Assembly: GCF_006345805.1 (NCBI RefSeq)
Contig: NC_043010.1
Coordinates: 43,152,001-43,216,000, forward strand
Reading direction: 5' to 3'
Length of the DNA: 64,000 nt
From: Octopus sinensis
Lineage: Eukaryota
Shown here: positions 16,598 through 52,154 of the stretch, one piece after another
How positions within the stretch are numbered: position 1 is the first letter of the stretch
How the letters are laid out: each line of letters begins with the position of its first letter
Notes under the pieces: generated by a model
The model's database searches: none
What the model was told of the DNA's origin: nothing
The model's input: the letters and a program-made list of their open reading frames with translations, nothing else
Made by a program: the position numbers and the translations under genes

Positions 16598-18199
16598 ATG
16601 TATACTATACCATCTATGTATTCAGTTGGTAAACAATATATTTTTGATATTACTGGGAAAGCTTTCACACAAGAAGATTTGGTGAGATCTGAGGATTATT
16701 TTGACAACAATAGTGAAAAACAGTTCAGCTATACAAGCCAGCCAACATTTCCTACACAACCCAATATGAATCCTCTTGAACAGCCCACTTCAACAGCAAG
16801 TTCGACAAGTGAAAACTATGTACCTTATCGAAAACCTTTTCCTCAACAAACTGTTTCTTCTCAAGGTACTGGTGAAACGTCAAGAAATTCAGAAGCTACA
16901 GAAGCTGAAACTGAAAACACAAACTATTCTGGTGATTGTTGCAGTGAACAACAAAGAGCTCGTAACTGCTCAACCAGTTGCTACAGCACTCCAAAAGCCC
17001 ACAAGTGTGCTCACTGTTCAAAGACTTTCGCTCGGAGAACTTATTTAAAAAGTCATGAGCGAGTCCATTCTGGTGAGAAACCTTTCAATTGTATGTATTG
17101 TCGTAAAGCCTTTTCGCAGCGAACAAACGTTCGTAGTCATGAGCGAACACACACAGGTGAAAAACCTTATATGTGTTTAATTTGCCGTCGATCTTTTTGT
17201 CAGCAGAATGAGCTGCGGTCACACGAGCGTGTACATACAGGTGTTAGACCATATCAGTGTCATTTTTGTCCCAAAGCTTTCACTCAGCTTACCAATCTGC
17301 GGAATCATATAAGAATACACACAGGCGAAAAACCATTTGTATGTATTGTGTGCGCTCGCTCATTTACTCAACATAACGAACTTCGAAGTCACGAACGAGT
17401 TCATACTGGAGAAAAACCATTTAGTTGTTCCATGTGTTCTAAAGCTTTTTCACAAAGAACTAATTTACGAAATCACGAAAGAGTTCACTCTGGAGAAAAA
17501 CCATTCCAGTGTATTTACTGTTCGAAATCCTTCTCCCAGAGAGGTACGTTAAAAAATCACGAACATACTCATACAACAGATAAAAATCAAGTAAAAACGT
17601 CTCAGAAATCTGCATCGTTGTCTTCATCTAATTCATTAAGCCATCATTCCAAAAGTCAAAGTCATGAGCAAAAATCTAGACAGCTGGGACAACAAGAACT
17701 TATTCAGCCTGCTTCCTCAGCTGAACCATGCCAAAAAGAACCATCAACTTCAGCATTCCATCATAAACCACAATCATCATCTGTCATTTCAAAATGGGTT
17801 AATTCGACATCATCACATTCAAAGTCTCAAAGCAATTCATCTGTTTCTCGTATATCTCATGCAAACACACACGGACGTGTTTCTCTTGGAGATGACAGCA
17901 GCCGCAAAGAAATACAATCATCCTCATCTATTAGATTTCAGCAGGTACCAACTATTCCACCAGTAATAATGGCACCTTCCTTTTTGCACCAGATGACCCA
18001 GGGCTGGGAAAATACCTACAATTGGCCCCGTGGATTTCCTATGGCTGCTGCTTGGAATACATCAGGGAAAAATATTTCATCTGTATATTCTCATGAAGGA
18101 AAGTTGAAAAAACAAAAGTCCTCTTCTGGAGATATAAATAAAGGCAAGAATATGAACTCTTATGATGTGAGGAAAGAAATTCAATCAAGCTCCAAGTAG
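16598..18199 (+). CDS. ZNF-A: tandem C2H2 zinc-finger protein, 533 aa, 7 fingers (17006-17572), S/T/Q-rich flanks, conserved N- and C-terminal motifs shared with ZNF-B
   Basis: Uninterrupted ORF with canonical CxxC-x12-HxxxH fingers and TGEKP linkers; ATG at 16598 preferred over the GTG at 16571 because it aligns with the ZNF-B start; candidate splice acceptor at 16293-16294. Confidence 0.93.
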   Translation: MYTIPSMYSVGKQYIFDITGKAFTQEDLVRSEDYFDNNSEKQFSYTSQPTFPTQPNMNPLEQPTSTASSTSENYVPYRKPFPQQTVSSQGTGETSRNSEATEAETENTNYSGDCCSEQQRARNCSTSCYSTPKAHKCAHCSKTFARRTYLKSHERVHSGEKPFNCMYCRKAFSQRTNVRSHERTHTGEKPYMCLICRRSFCQQNELRSHERVHTGVRPYQCHFCPKAFTQLTNLRNHIRIHTGEKPFVCIVCARSFTQHNELRSHERVHTGEKPFSCSMCSKAFSQRTNLRNHERVHSGEKPFQCIYCSKSFSQRGTLKNHEHTHTTDKNQVKTSQKSASLSSSNSLSHHSKSQSHEQKSRQLGQQELIQPASSAEPCQKEPSTSAFHHKPQSSSVISKWVNSTSSHSKSQSNSSVSRISHANTHGRVSLGDDSSRKEIQSSSSIRFQQVPTIPPVIMAPSFLHQMTQGWENTYNWPRGFPMAAAWNTSGKNISSVYSHEGKLKKQKSSSGDINKGKNMNSYDVRKEIQSSSK

Positions 18200-19604: not shown

Positions 19605-20320
19605 TCCTGTATCATCAACCTTTAATGTCTGCTGTCCATGCTGGCATGGGTTAGACAGTTTGACTGGAGCTGATGAGCCGGAGAGCTGCACCAGGTTCCA
19701 GTCTGATTTGACATGGTTTCTACTACTGGATGCCCTTCCTAACACCAACCACTTTAGGAGTGTAATGGGTGCTTTCACATGCCACCAGCATGGGTGCCAT
19801 TTACATGACACCAGCAATGACCACGACTACAATTCATTGGTGCCATGTAGATGGCACCAGACTACAATGCACAGGTGCCATTTACATGGCACCGACAGCA
19901 ACCACAACTACAATTCATGGGCACAGTGACTACAACCATGACTCATGGGTGCAATTTACATGGCACTGCCAATGACCACAACTCATGGGTGCCATTTACA
20001 TGGCACCAACAATGACCATGATTCCCAAGTGTCATTTACATGGAGCCGTCAATGATCACAACTACAAAGCATGGGTGCCATGACTACAATGCACAGGTGT
20101 CATTTACATAGCACCGGTGGTGACCACGACTATGATTCATGGGTTCCACTTACATGGCACCAACTATGACCACAACTATGATGCACAGGTGCCATTTACA
20201 TGACACCAGCATGGCTACAACAACGATTTCACTTGGCCTGACGAGTCTTCTCACACACAGCTTATCACCAGAGGTCTCGGTCACTTGCCATCACCTCTGT
20301 GAAGCCTAACGTTCAAAGAT
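19605..20320 (-). mobile_element. Repeat family D (SINE or LINE-tail-like, ggcattaggaagggcatccagc core) with expanded internal minisatellite
   Basis: ctggatgcccttcctaacaccaaccac core and ccatgctggcatgggtt terminal motif match the copies at 29540, 42805 and 56450. Confidence 0.75.
19790..20210. repeat. Minisatellite of palindromic GGTGCCAT-TTAC-ATGGCACC units, about 35-46 bp period
   Basis: About 9 full and 2 truncated units counted by eye; spacers resemble each other (aatgaccacgactacaat). Confidence 0.9.
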
Positions 20321-27963: not shown

Positions 27964-28059
27964 CGGAGATGTACTCGCATAGCAAGTAATTTGATCTGAG
28001 ATCGTATGCTGCAATTGTTGTATATATATATATATATATGGCATTAGGAAGGGCATCCA

Positions 28060-28310
28060 GTCATCATCATCATCATCATTGTTCGACTGTAGTCGAGACA
28101 ATGGAATTTACCATGCTACGCCAGACTTCACGATCCATCATGGCATTACAGAGGTCCTGTTGCTGGATGCCTGTATCCCTGGAGAACGTGATCAGAGACA
28201 GGACCCGGCAAAGCAGGGGCTGGACCTATATCCGCAGGTATACCATTAGGTCTGGTTCCCTGGGGAAGAGGAACCCTGGTGCAGTTAATTGTAAATTCCA
28301 TAGTCTTTTC
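28060..28310 (-). mobile_element. RTE LINE extreme 3' end with (GAT)n tail
   Basis: Minus strand: SRDTGIQQQDLCNAMMDREVWRSMVNSIVSTTVEQ* followed by tgatgatga. Confidence 0.7.
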
Positions 28311-28569
28311 AAATGGCTAATAATGTGTGCGCGCCACTACTACATAGAAACCATGCCAAAACAGGCAAATGGAAGGTGATCAGTGTTCCAGCTGACCAAA
28401 TCCTGTGAAACTGTCCAACCCATGCTAGCATGGAGAACAGACATTGAAAAGTGATAATGATGATGATGATGAAATATATGTGTGTATGTGTGTGCATGTG
28501 TGTGTGTGTTAATAACACCTAGAAGGAGGTACTTTTTCCACTCATGAAAGTGAATGGAGTTTTAGCCAG

Positions 28570-29028
28570 CAGGAACTGATGTCATCAGATGGTACCCAAT
28601 ATTCACCAGGTGTTTTTGACTCTGAACTGTGACACCCACCTGTTGGTGGGTCAGCACAGGTGGCAGAATCACTATTCTTCATTTCCTCCTGGCTTCCAGC
28701 TTAACTCCTCTCTCTTATTCCAAAGCTAACAAGAGGCTCTTGGAACTTCCTTTTCCGTCCTGCACACAGTCTCCTTTTACTCCTTTCCTCTCATTCCAAT
28801 GGCTGTAAGCATTCCTCCATGCCAACTGAGCAGAAATCCCCTACAGCCAATCTCAACTGAGAAAAGCCATAACTGCCATCCCTTCTCCCTGCAATCTTGC
28901 AGAAGGTTCTCATAATTGGCATGTTTCAATTTGTGGGCCTCATCTCAAGGGACTGTGAGCTCAATGAAGATAATTTTCTTGGTCTTTTCAGACAACAGAA
29001 CCACATCTGGCCTCAGAGTTGTATGGAC
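28570..29028 (-). mobile_element. Hero/NeSL-type non-LTR retrotransposon 3' end (restriction-like endonuclease domain plus 3'UTR), decayed
   Basis: Minus strand: HTTLRPDVVLLSEKTKKIIFIELTVP*DEAHKLKHANYENLLQDCREKGW..VEIGCRGF...RASC*LWNKR, matching the RPD..ELT..K..KY RLE signature. Confidence 0.8.
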
Positions 29029-29538
29029 AGCCTAGGGACCATTAATAGATATAGCAATTTGGATTATGAAATTCCACATAGAATTAGGAAAGCAAGTGTT
29101 GCTTTCGGAAGGCTAGAAAAGCACCTCTGGAGTCGGTGAGACATATGCAGAAAGACAAAGATAAAGGTGTACAAGGCATGTGTGCTTCCTTCTCTTCTCT
29201 ATGCCCGTGAGATATGGGTCACATATCGATACCACCTTAAACAACTGGAACGTTTCCATCAGATGTGCCTCAGATGGATTTATGGCATTAAGTGGAAGGA
29301 CCGCATCAGTGATCTTGAAATATTGGAAGGCTCTCGGTGTGAAAGTATAGAAGCTCTTGTGTTAAAGCAAAGGCTCAGATGGAGTGGTCATCTGGTTAGG
29401 ATGAAGGATTCAAGTATGCCAAAACAACTCTTTTATGGAGAGTTAGCTAAAGGAGAACGACCTCCACATAAACCAAAAAAGAGGTATAAGGACTTGCTGA
29501 AGGCTTCTTTAAGAGTGCTAAGAGTACCATACGAGTGA
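29029..29538 (+). mobile_element. RTE (BovB-like) LINE fragment
   Basis: LGT..EIPHRIRKASVAFGRL..KVYKACVLPSLLY..LRWSGHLVRM..PKQLFYGEL..G.RPPHKPKKRYKD; in-frame stops present. Confidence 0.9.
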
Positions 29539-29539
29539 G

Positions 29540-29946
29540 ATTGTTGCCAGAGCAACAAGCTGGCCTCCGTGATGATGGCATGTTAAAAACACCATTCGAG
29601 CATGATCATTACCTGCATCACCTTACTAGCACTTGTGCTGGTGGCACGTGAAAAAAACATTCGAGCGAGGTTGTTGCCAGTGCCGCTGGACTGGCTCCTG
29701 TGCAGGTGGCACATAAAAAGCACCATTTGAATGTGGCCGTTGCCAGTACTGCCTGACTGGCCCTCGTGCCAGTGGCATGTAAAAGCACCCACTACACTCT
29801 CGGAGTGGTTGGCATTAGGAAGGGCATCCAGCTGTAGAAACTCTGCCAGATCAGATTGGAGCGTGGTGCAGCCATCTGGTTTGCCAGTCCTCAGTCAAAT
29901 CGTCCAACCCATGGTAGCATGGAAAGTGGATGTTAAACGATGGTGA
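29540..29946 (+). mobile_element. Repeat family D with internal tandem subunits
   Basis: gtggttggcattaggaagggcatccagctgtagaaa...ccaacccatggtagcatggaaagtggatgttaaacgatg. Confidence 0.8.
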
Positions 29947-39713: not shown

Positions 39714-41417
39714 ATGTATCCTGTACAAACCATGTATACAATGGGAAATCAGTTTAACTTTGAAATTTATGGTCCAACATCCCTTTATTCATCTTTAACT
39801 TCAAAAGAAGGCCCATCCAATGGGAAGTGCCAACAGAAGAGTGCTTTAGGTATACCCTGTGGTTCATCAGGGACTTCCTCAGTTACAAATAGCACTAAAA
39901 AACCTTACAAGTGTGACGTTTGTAGAAAGGGATTTTCAAGACAGGTCAATTTGTCCAATCATGAGGCGATACCTGCTGACGATAAGCATTTCTATTGCCA
40001 ATATTGCAAAAAAGCATTTTCGCAACGAGCACATTTACGCACCCATGAATTTACCCACATGGCTGAGAAACCTTTTAGCTGTACTTTTTGCAGTAAAACT
40101 TTTGCTCAGAGGACAAATTTTGATAACCACCGAAGAATTCATACTGGAGAAAGACCTTACCATTGCTCTTTTTGTGAAAAATCCTTTAGTCAACGTACCA
40201 ATTTGGACAACCACGAACGGACTCATACAGGAATTAAACCATATGTTTGTTCAGTGTGTAAAAAATGTTTTTCTCAGATCACAAACTTGAAATATCACGA
40301 ACGGATTCATACAGGGGTAAAACCATACCATTGTGCCTTCTGTGAAAAGTCGTTCACTCAACAAACAGAACTTAAAAACCATGAACGTACACATACAGGC
40401 GAAAAACCTTTTCATTGTACACTTTGTGATAAATCTTTTACCCAGAGAACGAACTTAATTAATCATAGGCGTATACACACTGGGGAAAAACCATTTCAGT
40501 GTGGCTTTTGTGATAAATCTTTTGCTCAGCGCACAAATTTGGATAACCATAAGCGCACACATACAGGAGAAAAACCATTCCATTGTTCCTTCTGTGAAAA
40601 ATCATTTGCTCAACGAACAAATCTGGATAATCACCGAAGAACACACACTGGGGAAAAGCCATTCGATTGCAATTATTGTGGGAAAGGTTTTGCACAGCGT
40701 ACAAACCTTGACAACCACAGACGAATACATACAGGGGAACAACCCTTAAGCTGTAACTATTGTGGGAAAACATTCGCCCAGAAAACAAACTTGGACAACC
40801 ATCATAGAATTCACACAGGAGAAAAACCATTTACTTGCGAAGTGTGTGGAAAATCTTTTTCCCAGCGTGCCATCTTAGATAACCACAGAAAAATTCATAA
40901 AGTCAAATTACTTCAGTCATGTAAGTCATTCGACCAGAGAAATGAGAGTGAAATAGAAGCTGCTAGAATAGAGGTGAACAACAGGACATCAAATGAAGAG
41001 GGTAAATGCAATCAGTCAGGAAGTAACCAACAACAAAATACACCTGGAATGCAGTCACTCAATACAGCTGATATTGCTCGCCGAAAATCAGCGTTTCCTC
41101 AGCGATTAGATGCAAAGAGCTATAACCAACACAACCCTGTAGTATCAAATAACAGTGAATCTTTTTTAAGGGATTCTCAGCTAACACAGTCTATACCAAG
41201 CCATCGTATGCAGTCTTCTTCATTATCAACCAGCTGGATGAATTCTCAGTTTCTACACCAAATGCCACAGACATGGGAAAATAATTATGGCTGGCCCAGA
41301 GGTTTTCCCATGACTTCTTTGTGGAACTCGGGTTGGACAAATACACCAAGTACACTCTCTTGTGCAATGAGACAAAACAAACCAGGAATTGAAATGGAGT
41401 TACACCAGAGAACTTGA
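39714..41417 (+). CDS. ZNF-B: tandem C2H2 zinc-finger protein, 567 aa, 11 canonical fingers (39996-40898) plus one degenerate N-terminal finger, conserved N- and C-terminal motifs shared with ZNF-A
   Basis: Uninterrupted ORF, TGEKP linkers, exact 84-nt finger period; splice acceptor tttttcattcAG at 39673-39674 shortly before the ATG. Confidence 0.95.
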   Translation: MYPVQTMYTMGNQFNFEIYGPTSLYSSLTSKEGPSNGKCQQKSALGIPCGSSGTSSVTNSTKKPYKCDVCRKGFSRQVNLSNHEAIPADDKHFYCQYCKKAFSQRAHLRTHEFTHMAEKPFSCTFCSKTFAQRTNFDNHRRIHTGERPYHCSFCEKSFSQRTNLDNHERTHTGIKPYVCSVCKKCFSQITNLKYHERIHTGVKPYHCAFCEKSFTQQTELKNHERTHTGEKPFHCTLCDKSFTQRTNLINHRRIHTGEKPFQCGFCDKSFAQRTNLDNHKRTHTGEKPFHCSFCEKSFAQRTNLDNHRRTHTGEKPFDCNYCGKGFAQRTNLDNHRRIHTGEQPLSCNYCGKTFAQKTNLDNHHRIHTGEKPFTCEVCGKSFSQRAILDNHRKIHKVKLLQSCKSFDQRNESEIEAARIEVNNRTSNEEGKCNQSGSNQQQNTPGMQSLNTADIARRKSAFPQRLDAKSYNQHNPVVSNNSESFLRDSQLTQSIPSHRMQSSSLSTSWMNSQFLHQMPQTWENNYGWPRGFPMTSLWNSGWTNTPSTLSCAMRQNKPGIEMELHQRT

Positions 41418-41554: not shown

Positions 41555-41569
41555 CACATACATACATAT

Positions 41570-41612
<43 letters not shown>

Positions 41613-41662
41613 ATATATATATATATATTATATATATATATATATATTTGTATATATATATA

Positions 41663-41744
<82 letters not shown>

Positions 41745-43020: not shown

Positions 43021-43058
<38 letters not shown>

Positions 43059-43101
43059 ATTATATGCTCGATAGTATATATACATATATATATATATATA
43101 T

Positions 43102-43140
<39 letters not shown>

Positions 43141-43172
43141 TATATATATATATACATATATATATACATACT

Positions 43173-43206
<34 letters not shown>

Positions 43207-43217
43207 ATATATATATA

Positions 43218-43262
<45 letters not shown>

Positions 43263-43270
43263 ACATATAT
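43020..43270. repeat. (TA)n microsatellite
   Basis: Direct reading. Confidence 0.95.
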
Positions 43271-43535
43271 ATATTGAGAAAAAGGAGGCAGTCAGAATTT
43301 TGGATAAATCTTTATTTGCACTTTTGTTCGTTTATTGAACTCAAGACAAAATCAAAATTCAAAATGATAAAAACAGAACGTTTCCTTGTTCATTTAAATG
43401 AATCAGATGTTTTTGGTTAGAGAAATATTTTGGTTTTTCTGGTAAAAGGGGGTAAGTGAGAAAGGAAAGCAAAGGAGAGAGAGAAAAATAGACACAGAGG
43501 TTTCAGGACAATAGATAGATAGGTAGATAGATAGA

Positions 43536-51434: not shown

Positions 51435-52154
51435 TTATTGCTGCTCACTGTCATAATAAGAATTTTCTTCTGATTGGGAGCCACTGCTGTCGCCGCTGTT
51501 GCTGCATGCATCTAATTGCATTCTTTCAGTTTGATGTGTCTTCTCATGACACTTCAGCAATGCTTTGCGATGGAACACTTTTCGACAAATTCTGCAGAAG
51601 AGGGTAGCACGGTTAGAATGAGTTTTGATGTGGCTCTTTAAATTTCCTTTCTGCGAAAAAGCTTTGTTGCAAATCATACAAATGAATGGCTTTTCGCCGC
51701 TGTGTGTACGTTGATGAATTTTGAGGTTTGTGCGCTGGGAAAAAGATTTTGAACAGACATTGCAAACAAATGGTTTAAATCCAGTATGAATATTTTCATG
51801 GTTCTTCAGATTGGTCCGCTGTGAGAAAGCTTTTTCACAGACTTCACACACAAAAGGTTTCTCACCACTGTGAACGCGTTCATGATTCTTTAGGTTGGTT
51901 CTCTGTGTGAAAGATGCCTGGCAGACATTGCAGTGGAACGGTTTCTCTCCTGTGTGTGTACGTTCATGGGTTTTTAAATTGGTTCGTTGTGAGAAACTTT
52001 TGTCACACTGGGTGCAGTGAAATATCTTATCTGGAACGGCTGGAGACATCTCTGGATGGTTGTTCTTCTTATGGCGTTTCAGCTGAGCATACCTATCAAA
52101 TGTTTTGCCACATATGTCACAAGCATGTGGTGCTTTATCTTCAGGTCTGTACAT
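51435..52154 (-). CDS. ZNF-C: compact C2H2 zinc-finger protein, at least 239 aa, 7 fingers (51534-52121), short acidic Ser-rich tail
   Basis: Intact ORF with TGEKP-linked QRTN fingers; splice acceptors just upstream (exon start 52156 or 52160), so a small upstream coding exon cannot be excluded. Confidence 0.92.
   Translation of the reverse strand: MYRPEDKAPHACDICGKTFDRYAQLKRHKKNNHPEMSPAVPDKIFHCTQCDKSFSQRTNLKTHERTHTGEKPFHCNVCQASFTQRTNLKNHERVHSGEKPFVCEVCEKAFSQRTNLKNHENIHTGFKPFVCNVCSKSFSQRTNLKIHQRTHSGEKPFICMICNKAFSQKGNLKSHIKTHSNRATLFCRICRKVFHRKALLKCHEKTHQTERMQLDACSNSGDSSGSQSEENSYYDSEQQ

Follow-up and report, generated by a model that had tools for sequence, protein, structure and literature searches.

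What does a zinc-finger protein recognise when nearly all of its fingers carry the same DNA-contact residues, and what has kept these residues the same? The question is raised by a stretch of 64,000 nucleotides (nt) of the Octopus sinensis genome (NCBI RefSeq assembly GCF_006345805.1, contig NC_043010.1, positions 43,152,001 to 43,216,000 of the forward strand), hereafter the window, which has a GC content of 34.7%, carries many dinucleotide microsatellites and, in a six-frame scan, contains exactly three arrays of C2H2 zinc fingers, in the genes ZNF-A, ZNF-B and ZNF-C (ZNF, zinc finger). An initial annotation of the window, made from the letters alone, had read them as homotypic arrays that are kept by selection and bind A-tracts or (NAA)n simple repeats, and our results partly support this interpretation. 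Here we describe the anatomy, duplication age, selective constraint and phylogenetic spread of these genes, in which near-uniform contact residues have been held by long-term purifying selection, and we consider it probable that their products act as DNA-binding transcription factors with adenine-rich sites.

Near-uniform contact residues in three zinc-finger arrays

ZNF-B has the following features:

39714..41417, + strand: ZNF-B coding sequence (CDS), a single exon, complete from ATG to TGA, 567 amino acids (aa)
39714..39773, + strand: N-terminal family motif MYPVQTMYTMGNQFNFEIYG, shared in the alignment by ZNF-A and by relatives from octopus, Argonauta and cuttlefish
39912..39974, + strand: degenerate finger 0, CDVCRKGFSRQVNLSNHEAIP, read from the translation, with the second zinc-binding His lost
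39996..40898, + strand: array of 11 intact C2H2 fingers in the finger scan, with the same coordinates as in the initial annotation
41250..41363, + strand: C-terminal family motif FLHQMPQTWENNYGWPRGFPM...W.N.....SC, from an exhaustive tail search and alignment

The other two genes lie on either side of it:

16598..18199, + strand: ZNF-A CDS, an NCBI-annotated paralog of ZNF-B of 533 aa, with N- and C-terminal motifs in common with ZNF-B
17006..17572, + strand: ZNF-A array of 7 fingers, with the helices RRTYLKS, QRTNVRS, QQNELRS, QLTNLRN, QHNELRS, QRTNLRN and QRGTLKN
51435..52154, - strand: ZNF-C open reading frame (ORF) of 239 aa, with 7 fingers at 51534-52121; not a called gene

The helices of ZNF-B read, in order, QRAHLRT, QRTNFDN, QRTNLDN, QITNLKY, QQTELKN, QRTNLIN, QRTNLDN (three times), QKTNLDN and QRAILDN, and those of ZNF-C read RYAQLKR, QRTNLKT, QRTNLKN (twice), QRTNLKI, QKGNLKS and RKALLKC. 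Gln occupies helix position -1 in 22 of the 25 intact fingers (ZNF-A 6/7, ZNF-B 11/11, ZNF-C 5/7), and 15 of them carry Q-x-T-N (3, 8 and 4, respectively), so that the counts of the initial annotation were reproduced by our scan. The three codon sets it had quoted for the peptide QRTNLDNH stand verbatim in fingers B7, B8 and B9, and B3 uses a fourth (caa cgt acc aat ttg gac aac cac). In ZNF-A, two finger types alternate over 17174-17488, namely QxNELRS in fingers 3 and 5 and QxTNLRN in fingers 4 and 6.

This near-uniformity, which we regard as confirmed, is rare. Among 1,687 fingers of 116 generic poly-zinc-finger proteins, which were picked for similarity to the genes under study and hence form a conservative comparison, Q(-1) was found in 32%, QxxN in 5.3% and QxTN in 0.6%, and among 796 fingers of the proteins that matched ZNF-C the share of QxTN was 0.9%. 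The binomial probability (P ~1e-27) overstates the case because the fingers of one array share ancestry, and homotypy within each array is the fairer test. As a measure of it we divided the entropy at the four contact positions (helix -1, +2, +3 and +6) by that at ten free positions. For ZNF-B these values were 0.71 and 1.64 bit, and the ratio of 0.43 lies below all 211 comparison ZNFs (mean 1.46); ZNF-A (0.79) and ZNF-C (0.86) fall within the lowest 2-3% of the same set. The few comparison proteins that come nearly as low as ZNF-B are QxxN-rich Logan sequences that are ~55% identical to ZNF-C.

All 25 fingers keep their zinc ligands and Phe/Leu core, including 44 of 44 ligands across the 11 fingers of ZNF-B, and 24 fit C-x2-C-x12-H-x3-H exactly, the exception being finger 1 of ZNF-C (H-x4-H). 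In Pfam searches ZNF-B scored 180.7 bits for zf-C2H2 (cut-off 25.2) and 302.3 bits for zf-H2C2_2 (cut-off 40), and ZNF-A and ZNF-C likewise exceeded the gathering thresholds; only zinc-finger families were matched in the three proteins, with no KRAB (PF01352), SCAN, BTB or ZAD domain. The linkers of ZNF-B are TGEKP in 6 of 10 cases and TG-x-[KRQ]-P in 9 of 10, and those of ZNF-A follow [ST]G-x-[KR]-P in 6 of 6. Furthermore, the Lys of C-x2-C-x-K is kept in 21 and the Arg of H-x-R-x-H in 18 of 24 fingers. TGEKP-type linkers and conserved Lys and Arg are hallmarks of arrays that wrap around double-stranded DNA (dsDNA), and we predict such binding for these proteins.

Directly 3' of ZNF-B there are two long (AT)n arrays, one of ~94 units at 41558-41743 and one of ~126 units at 43021-43274. 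The first begins 141 nt past the stop codon, and similar AT, AC and TATC arrays are scattered in the window.

Constraint on the contact residues and age of the duplication

Comparison of the fingers within ZNF-B by position class revealed that the contact residues are its slowest-changing positions after the structural ones. The proportion of nonsynonymous differences (pN) was 0.03 for zinc ligands and hydrophobic core, 0.14 for the contact positions, 0.24 for the linker, 0.40 for the helix C-terminus, 0.46 for other helix positions, 0.53 for free beta and loop positions and 0.65 for the last linker residue, at a proportion of synonymous differences (pS) of 0.7-1.2 in each class. Contact positions are more constrained than the helix and free positions around them (0.14 against 0.46-0.53), and when sets of four were picked at random from the 15 positions outside ligands, core and linker, only 1% had a pN as low as theirs. 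The initial annotation had contrasted these arrays with the diversified fingerprints typical of KRAB-ZNFs, and this contrast holds in that the contact residues are the most constrained of the variable positions. The same pattern is weaker in ZNF-A and ZNF-C, where contact pN was 0.37-0.38 against 0.61-0.67 at free positions.

Between species, the evidence comes from ZNF-A. It is protein P0128 of our collection, has XP_014790726 from O. bimaculoides and CAI9733009 from O. vulgaris among its orthologs, and falls in a 90%-identity cluster that contains proteins of both species. Over the 189 codons of its array, O. sinensis and O. bimaculoides (locus L002) differ by 22 synonymous and 0 nonsynonymous substitutions (dS 0.21, dN 0; synonymous and nonsynonymous substitutions per site, respectively), whereas the non-finger flanks give a dS of 0.06, a dN of 0.015 and a dN/dS of ~0.24. 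Among the proteins of four octopus species the array is 100% identical, and every substitution lies outside it. The dN/dS comparison that the initial annotation had proposed was thereby obtained for fingers within arrays and for ZNF-A orthologs, the only ones it covers; no ZNF-B or ZNF-C orthologs were retrieved, and the O. bimaculoides locus ends at window-equivalent 25,996, ~14 kb short of ZNF-B. By collinearity, the O. bimaculoides ortholog of ZNF-B would be expected ~12-16 kb past the low-coordinate end of L002, at about 22.31-22.32 Mb of CM046614.1. For ZNF-B we infer selection from the within-array pattern together with the intact 567-codon frame, and for ZNF-C from the within-array pattern. 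Taken together, the low contact pN of ZNF-B and the dN of 0 in the ZNF-A array support long-term purifying selection on the contact residues, strongly so for ZNF-B within the array and for ZNF-A between species, and bear out the claim that the arrays are kept by selection.

As a side observation, the dS of the ZNF-A array (17006-17572, aligned with L002 10001-11590) is ~3.5x that of its own flanks and above the ~8% intergenic divergence (Fisher P = 6e-4). The 22 differences are distributed across the seven fingers; 18 of them are transitions and 13 lie in a CpG context, and the fingers have a CpG density of 4.8% compared with 1.2% for the flanks. The excess is best explained by CpG hypermutability of the Arg and His-Glu-Arg codons, and a conversion tract was rejected given the transition- and CpG-rich differences over all seven fingers.

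How old is the duplication that gave rise to such similar fingers? In pairwise Nei-Gojobori comparison of the fingers pS averages 0.83, past saturation, at a pN of 0.19-0.26. When all finger pairs with an identical amino acid in the same column were compared with the genes' own codon usage, the same codon was used in 46.8% of cases against 46.6% expected under full randomisation, and in the helices of the QxTN fingers in 40% against 44% expected. Nucleotide identity is 65.5% between adjacent and 62.2% between distant fingers. With synonymous sites saturated and codon matches at chance level, the claim that the identical peptides do not stem from a recent tandem duplication stands, and it needs one correction: duplication within the array did happen, and our data support that it is ancient rather than absent. 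Among 64 fingers of six family proteins, the best mutual matches at non-contact, non-ligand positions were B7/B8, B9/B10 and B3/B8, and at these positions the QxTN fingers of ZNF-B are 59% identical to each other compared with 42% to other fingers. Because similar fingers pair with one another even at positions that do not contact DNA, we conclude that the uniformity of ZNF-B began as an old in-array duplication.

A coleoid family of zinc-finger genes and its relatives

ZNF-A and ZNF-B share an N-terminal motif, MYPVQ.MY..GNQFNF (more generally MY(P)VQ..Y..GNQFNF, the ZNF-A form being diverged), which in ZNF-B is covered by no Pfam family, and a C-terminal motif, [FY]L[HQ].M.Q.WE.NY.W.RGFPM...W.N.....SC. 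Both also occur in octopus proteins with generic names such as 'ZFP2', 'zinc finger protein 2 homolog' and 'OZF'. An exhaustive profile-free search of 1.84 billion proteins with the ZNF-B tail yielded 9 representatives, and the named carriers are from Acanthosepion (Sepia) pharaonis, Octopus species and Argonauta hians. Since these include cuttlefish, Octopus and Argonauta, the family predates the octopod-decapod split. ZNF-A and ZNF-B belong to a small family whose sequences have to date come from coleoid cephalopods (octopods and cuttlefish) and from no other group. The word 'KRAB' in the names of two cuttlefish relatives is the depositor's label only.

Members of this family include P0045 (O. 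bimaculoides 'ZFP2'), P0024 (O. vulgaris 'zinc finger protein 2 homolog'), GAB1604214 (Argonauta hians) and CAE1165441 (Acanthosepion pharaonis). They resemble ZNF-A and ZNF-B in both terminal motifs, in a first QRA(H)L finger and in a QQTE(L/W)KN finger, such that individual fingers can be traced across paralogs (the first as QRAHL), and in the dominance of Q(-1)/N(+3), with helices such as QKINLDN, QQGNLKx, xQINLRN and QRTNLDN in P0045, P0038, P0024 and P0073. Overall, however, the paralogs are only ~39-45% identical to ZNF-A and ZNF-B, and they cycle three finger types (QKINLDN, xQINLRN and QQGNLKx) with short TG(D/E)LF linkers, whereas ZNF-B has one dominant type, QRTNLDN, and canonical linkers. 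P0038, a Logan protein, is presumably from cuttlefish, since it matches P0121, a cuttlefish fragment; it shares with octopus P0045 41 of 56 contact residues, 71% of finger residues and 53% of non-finger residues. In O. bimaculoides, the P0045 gene and the ZNF-A locus are on one chromosome, 19 Mb apart. The sequences thus suggest for the ZNF-A/B family the profile of an old conserved regulator rather than of a fast-evolving, transposon-chasing ZNF.

P0045, P0038, P0024 and P0073 (for example at L003 10001-12424) are built as a three-finger super-repeat with a short TG(D/E)L(F/Y) linker after the ..NLD/NDH fingers. P0024 and P0073 also contain odd NQFFLK(I/N)H fingers without polar contact residues, which may be spacers or non-DNA-binding.

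ZNF-C carries neither the N- nor the C-terminal motif of ZNF-A and ZNF-B and is a separate small ZNF outside their family. Its closest relatives, the Logan proteins P0187, P0192 and P0161 (~55% identity), are strongly Q(-1)/N(+3)-homotypic, with arrays of the type QRTNLKN QRGNLNT QKGNLKN .. QRANLKI QKGNLKC, and the Q/N pattern therefore extends beyond the ZNF-A/B family.

Predicted targets, possible functions and surrounding sequence

The recognition code invoked in the initial annotation, in which Gln at -1 and Asn at +3 each favour adenine and QRANLRA is the engineered AAA module, agrees with the literature. At the three canonical positions, numbered -7, -4 and -1 and equivalent to helix -1, +3 and +6, Asn or Gln recognises adenine, and at helix +2 small residues are permissive (PMC12264921); every engineered xAA module has Q(-1)/N(+3), with QRANLRA for AAA, QSSNLVR for GAA and QSGNLTE for CAA (PMC9705829, table 2). 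Consistent with this, the QRANLRA finger in the solved Aart chain (2i13) aligns with the QRTNLDN fingers of ZNF-B. Using a hand-written recognition-code table, we derived the predicted sites 5'-AnA AAA AAA AAA AAA AAA ACA nAA AAA AAA tGA-3' for ZNF-B, with an (AAA)5 core, 5'-AtA AAA tCA AAA tCA tAA tnG-3' for ZNF-A and 5'-ntG tAA nAA AAA AAA tAA GnG-3' for ZNF-C; the finger alternation of ZNF-A would translate into a hexamer-periodic site, (AAA-nCA)2. On this code, adenine-rich binding by the arrays is plausible.

The explanation we favour, and hold to be probable, is that ZNF-A and ZNF-B represent a coleoid C2H2 family and ZNF-C a separate gene, that an old multiplication of QRTNLDN fingers was followed by retention of the contacts, and that all three proteins serve as sequence-specific transcription factors on A-rich sites. 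A QRTNLDN-type finger multiplied inside the ZNF-B array long ago; its framework and all synonymous sites then drifted to saturation, and purifying selection kept Gln -1, Thr +2, Asn +3 and Asn +6 almost fixed. Gln and Asn at the contact positions are expected to hydrogen-bond adenine in the major groove, so that each such finger should read an AAA (or NAA) triplet. As a class, the genes most likely fit known C2H2 transcription factors, with an unusual constraint pattern that is the inverse of that of PRDM9.

Such a pattern matters for how large ZNF repertoires are viewed. The number of C2H2 genes in cephalopod genomes is put at about 1,800-2,800, with targets essentially unknown (PMC9068888), and most discussion of large ZNF expansions assumes diversifying, transposon-chasing contact residues (PMC10547256). 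The passages searched of cephalopod genome papers describe large C2H2 expansions and do not contain the Q/N fingerprint pattern. The octopus genes display the reverse regime, in which frameworks have diverged and contacts are fixed by purifying selection in a family older than the octopus-cuttlefish split. The resulting binding prediction is simple and falsifiable, namely AA at every third base and (AAA)5 at the ZNF-B core, which makes ZNF-B a convenient starting point for finding the target of a cephalopod-specific transcription factor, and would allow one to ask whether a natural protein can repeat Gln/Asn-adenine readout over many consecutive triplets. Should the motif prove ordinary, the finding would shrink to three conserved lineage-specific ZNF genes, two of them seemingly unannotated.

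Several points weigh against adenine readout by selected, uniform fingers. The fingers of one array are non-independent samples, ZNF-A and ZNF-C are only moderately homotypic, with a contact pN near that of certain non-contact classes, natural arrays of this length as a rule bind with a subset of their fingers, and predictions from the code are fallible. In the solved natural complexes of Zfp568 and SALL4 with A:T-rich DNA, small or hydrophobic residues touch thymine methyls, and Gln/Asn-adenine contacts are not what is used (PMC12264921). Furthermore, exact look-up and homolog searches found ZNF-B in none of the NCBI-derived, UniRef and Logan protein sets, and ZNF-C had no exact match and no close ortholog in the databases, the generic ZNFs among the matches listed reaching at most 56% identity.

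Comparison with known systems places the three genes more closely. Krüppel-type poly-C2H2 transcription factors, among which ZFP568 (5v3m) and CTCF are the nearest solved structures, share the finger unit, the TGEKP linkers and the tandem array, and generic proteins of this type are ~45-53% identical to ZNF-B among the matches listed; they differ from ZNF-B in that its contact residues are the least variable of the non-structural positions, and the octopus genes lack the accessory domains named above in Pfam searches. The genes do not fit KRAB-ZNF repressors that target transposable elements (TEs), given that the Pfam search found no KRAB domain and the contact residues are not diversified. 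The engineered adenine modules and Aart resemble ZNF-B in Gln -1 and Asn +3 on a consensus framework, but ZNF-B is natural, differs from QRANLRA at +2 (T for A), +5 (D for R) and +6 (N for A), and repeats one module 5-7 times, whereas designed six-finger arrays (Aart; PMC9705829, table 2) use a different helix for each finger. Like the octopus proteins, ZNF384/Nmp4 (dA.dT), Zscan4 ((CA)n) and CLAMP ((GA)n) are C2H2 arrays, and they bind low-complexity targets (PMC8589989, PMC7083622, PMC5588930), while repeat binding by the octopus proteins is a prediction. None of the three was among the matches listed for the octopus genes, and no specific sequence relationship was seen. To our knowledge, the fingers of ZNF384 are not Q/N-homotypic.

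If repeat reading were true, the octopus genes would join this class of simple-repeat readers. We consider it unlikely, and the function speculative, that the arrays are, as the initial annotation had suggested, readers of simple repeats such as long A-tracts, (TAA/CAA/GAA)n or retroposon poly-A tails, which they would then mark or silence in a repeat-rich genome; apart from the simple make-up of the predicted site, our results do not support the idea. The predicted sites are indeed low-complexity and periodic; relative to a first-order Markov expectation, the window contains 26 A/T runs of at least 9 nt (3.5 expected, ~7-fold) and 15 (NAA) runs of at least 5 units (1.6 expected, ~9-fold); the three proteins just named, ZNF384 with homopolymeric dA.dT, Zscan4 with (CA)n and CLAMP with GA repeats, provide natural precedents; and matches to transposable elements have been predicted for octopus ZNFs as a class (PMC10547256). 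However, Tandem Repeats Finder (TRF) detected no (NAA)n microsatellite in the 64-kb window, the longest A/T run is 17 nt, and the abundant local repeats are (AT)n, (AC)n, (AG)n, (TATC)n and (TATG)n. The family is also old, with contact residues conserved finger by finger between octopus and cuttlefish, the invariance of the ZNF-A array across octopus species is the pattern of a conserved regulator and not of an arms race, and the Pfam search found no KRAB-like or other known silencing domain, all of which speaks against a microsatellite or retroposon-tail reader.

A further idea seems to us similarly unlikely: coleoids may hold natural polydactyl adenine readers, kept for hundreds of millions of years, in which nearly every finger contacts adenines via Gln or Asn, and ZNF-B might bind A-tracts or (NAA)n in a length-dependent, register-tolerant manner and so sense or organise low-complexity DNA that is rich in A (nucleosome-excluding tracts, microsatellites, TE tails) in a 65% AT, repeat-rich genome. 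If true, such polydactyl adenine readout would differ from the thymine-methyl contacts of the solved natural A:T-rich complexes.

We give still less credence to the proposal that the Gln/Asn surface serves something other than dsDNA readout, that is RNA, single-stranded DNA (ssDNA) or protein, in which case the code-based motif would be irrelevant. Some C2H2 fingers do bind RNA or protein, the paralogs of ZNF-B carry the non-canonical NQFFLK fingers and short linkers, and ZNF384, although the classic binder of dA.dT, was found in recent assays to favour T-rich ssDNA and overhangs above blunt dsDNA (PMC8589989). On the other hand, the linkers of ZNF-B are of the canonical TGEKP kind, the Lys and Arg that contact the backbone are kept, and it is precisely the four canonical base-contact positions at which constraint is highest.

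It is very improbable that ZNF-B is an unexpressed relic or young pseudogene whose uniform fingers merely record past selection. Its absence from the protein sets, in which ZNF-A of the same region is present with orthologs, would fit such a fate, as would the failure of protein searches to retrieve an ortholog: the concatenated N- and C-terminal parts had no match in a set of 5.8 billion proteins. ZNF-B and ZNF-C are intact ORFs of seemingly unannotated genes, with annotated ZNF-A 21 kb from ZNF-B, and the exact ZNF-B product corresponds to a gene called in GCA_006345805.1 (record CM016872.1, about 43.19 Mb). A frame of 567 codons is open by chance with P ~4e-19 at the window's base composition (35% GC), and the complete zinc ligands and both terminal family motifs likewise argue against decay.

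Finally, PRDM9 and young KRAB-ZNF arrays resemble ZNF-B in having tandem, near-alike fingers from in-array duplication. Such arrays combine hypervariable contact residues with frameworks that hardly differ in their DNA; ZNF-B is the opposite, with frameworks and synonymous sites saturated and contacts fixed. That its uniform fingers merely reflect a recent tandem duplication or ongoing, PRDM9-style gene conversion rather than selection on the contact residues has next to no probability, since the 84- and 168-nt periodicity reported by TRF and the B7/B8 and B9/B10 pairs stand against an inter-finger nucleotide identity of only 62-66%, divergence at free but not at contact positions, and saturated pS with chance-level codon matching, by which this explanation is refuted.

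Outside the three genes, no RNA gene turned up when the window was scanned with Rfam and for tRNAs. A GC-rich block at 28-30 kb (45% GC) contains short ORFs at 28038-29946 (+), for example ..CVLPSLLYAREIWVTY..LRWSGHLVRM.., and a Pfam search of those at 28-29.5 kb gave no match; from their appearance, these may be the 5'-truncated C-terminal end of a non-LTR retrotransposon ORF2. Lastly, 22-46-nt tandem repeats with a palindrome-like core, GTGCCA..TACATGGCAC, lie at 19765-20208, ~1.6 kb downstream of ZNF-A, and this region is ~88% identical to O. bimaculoides in the alignment.

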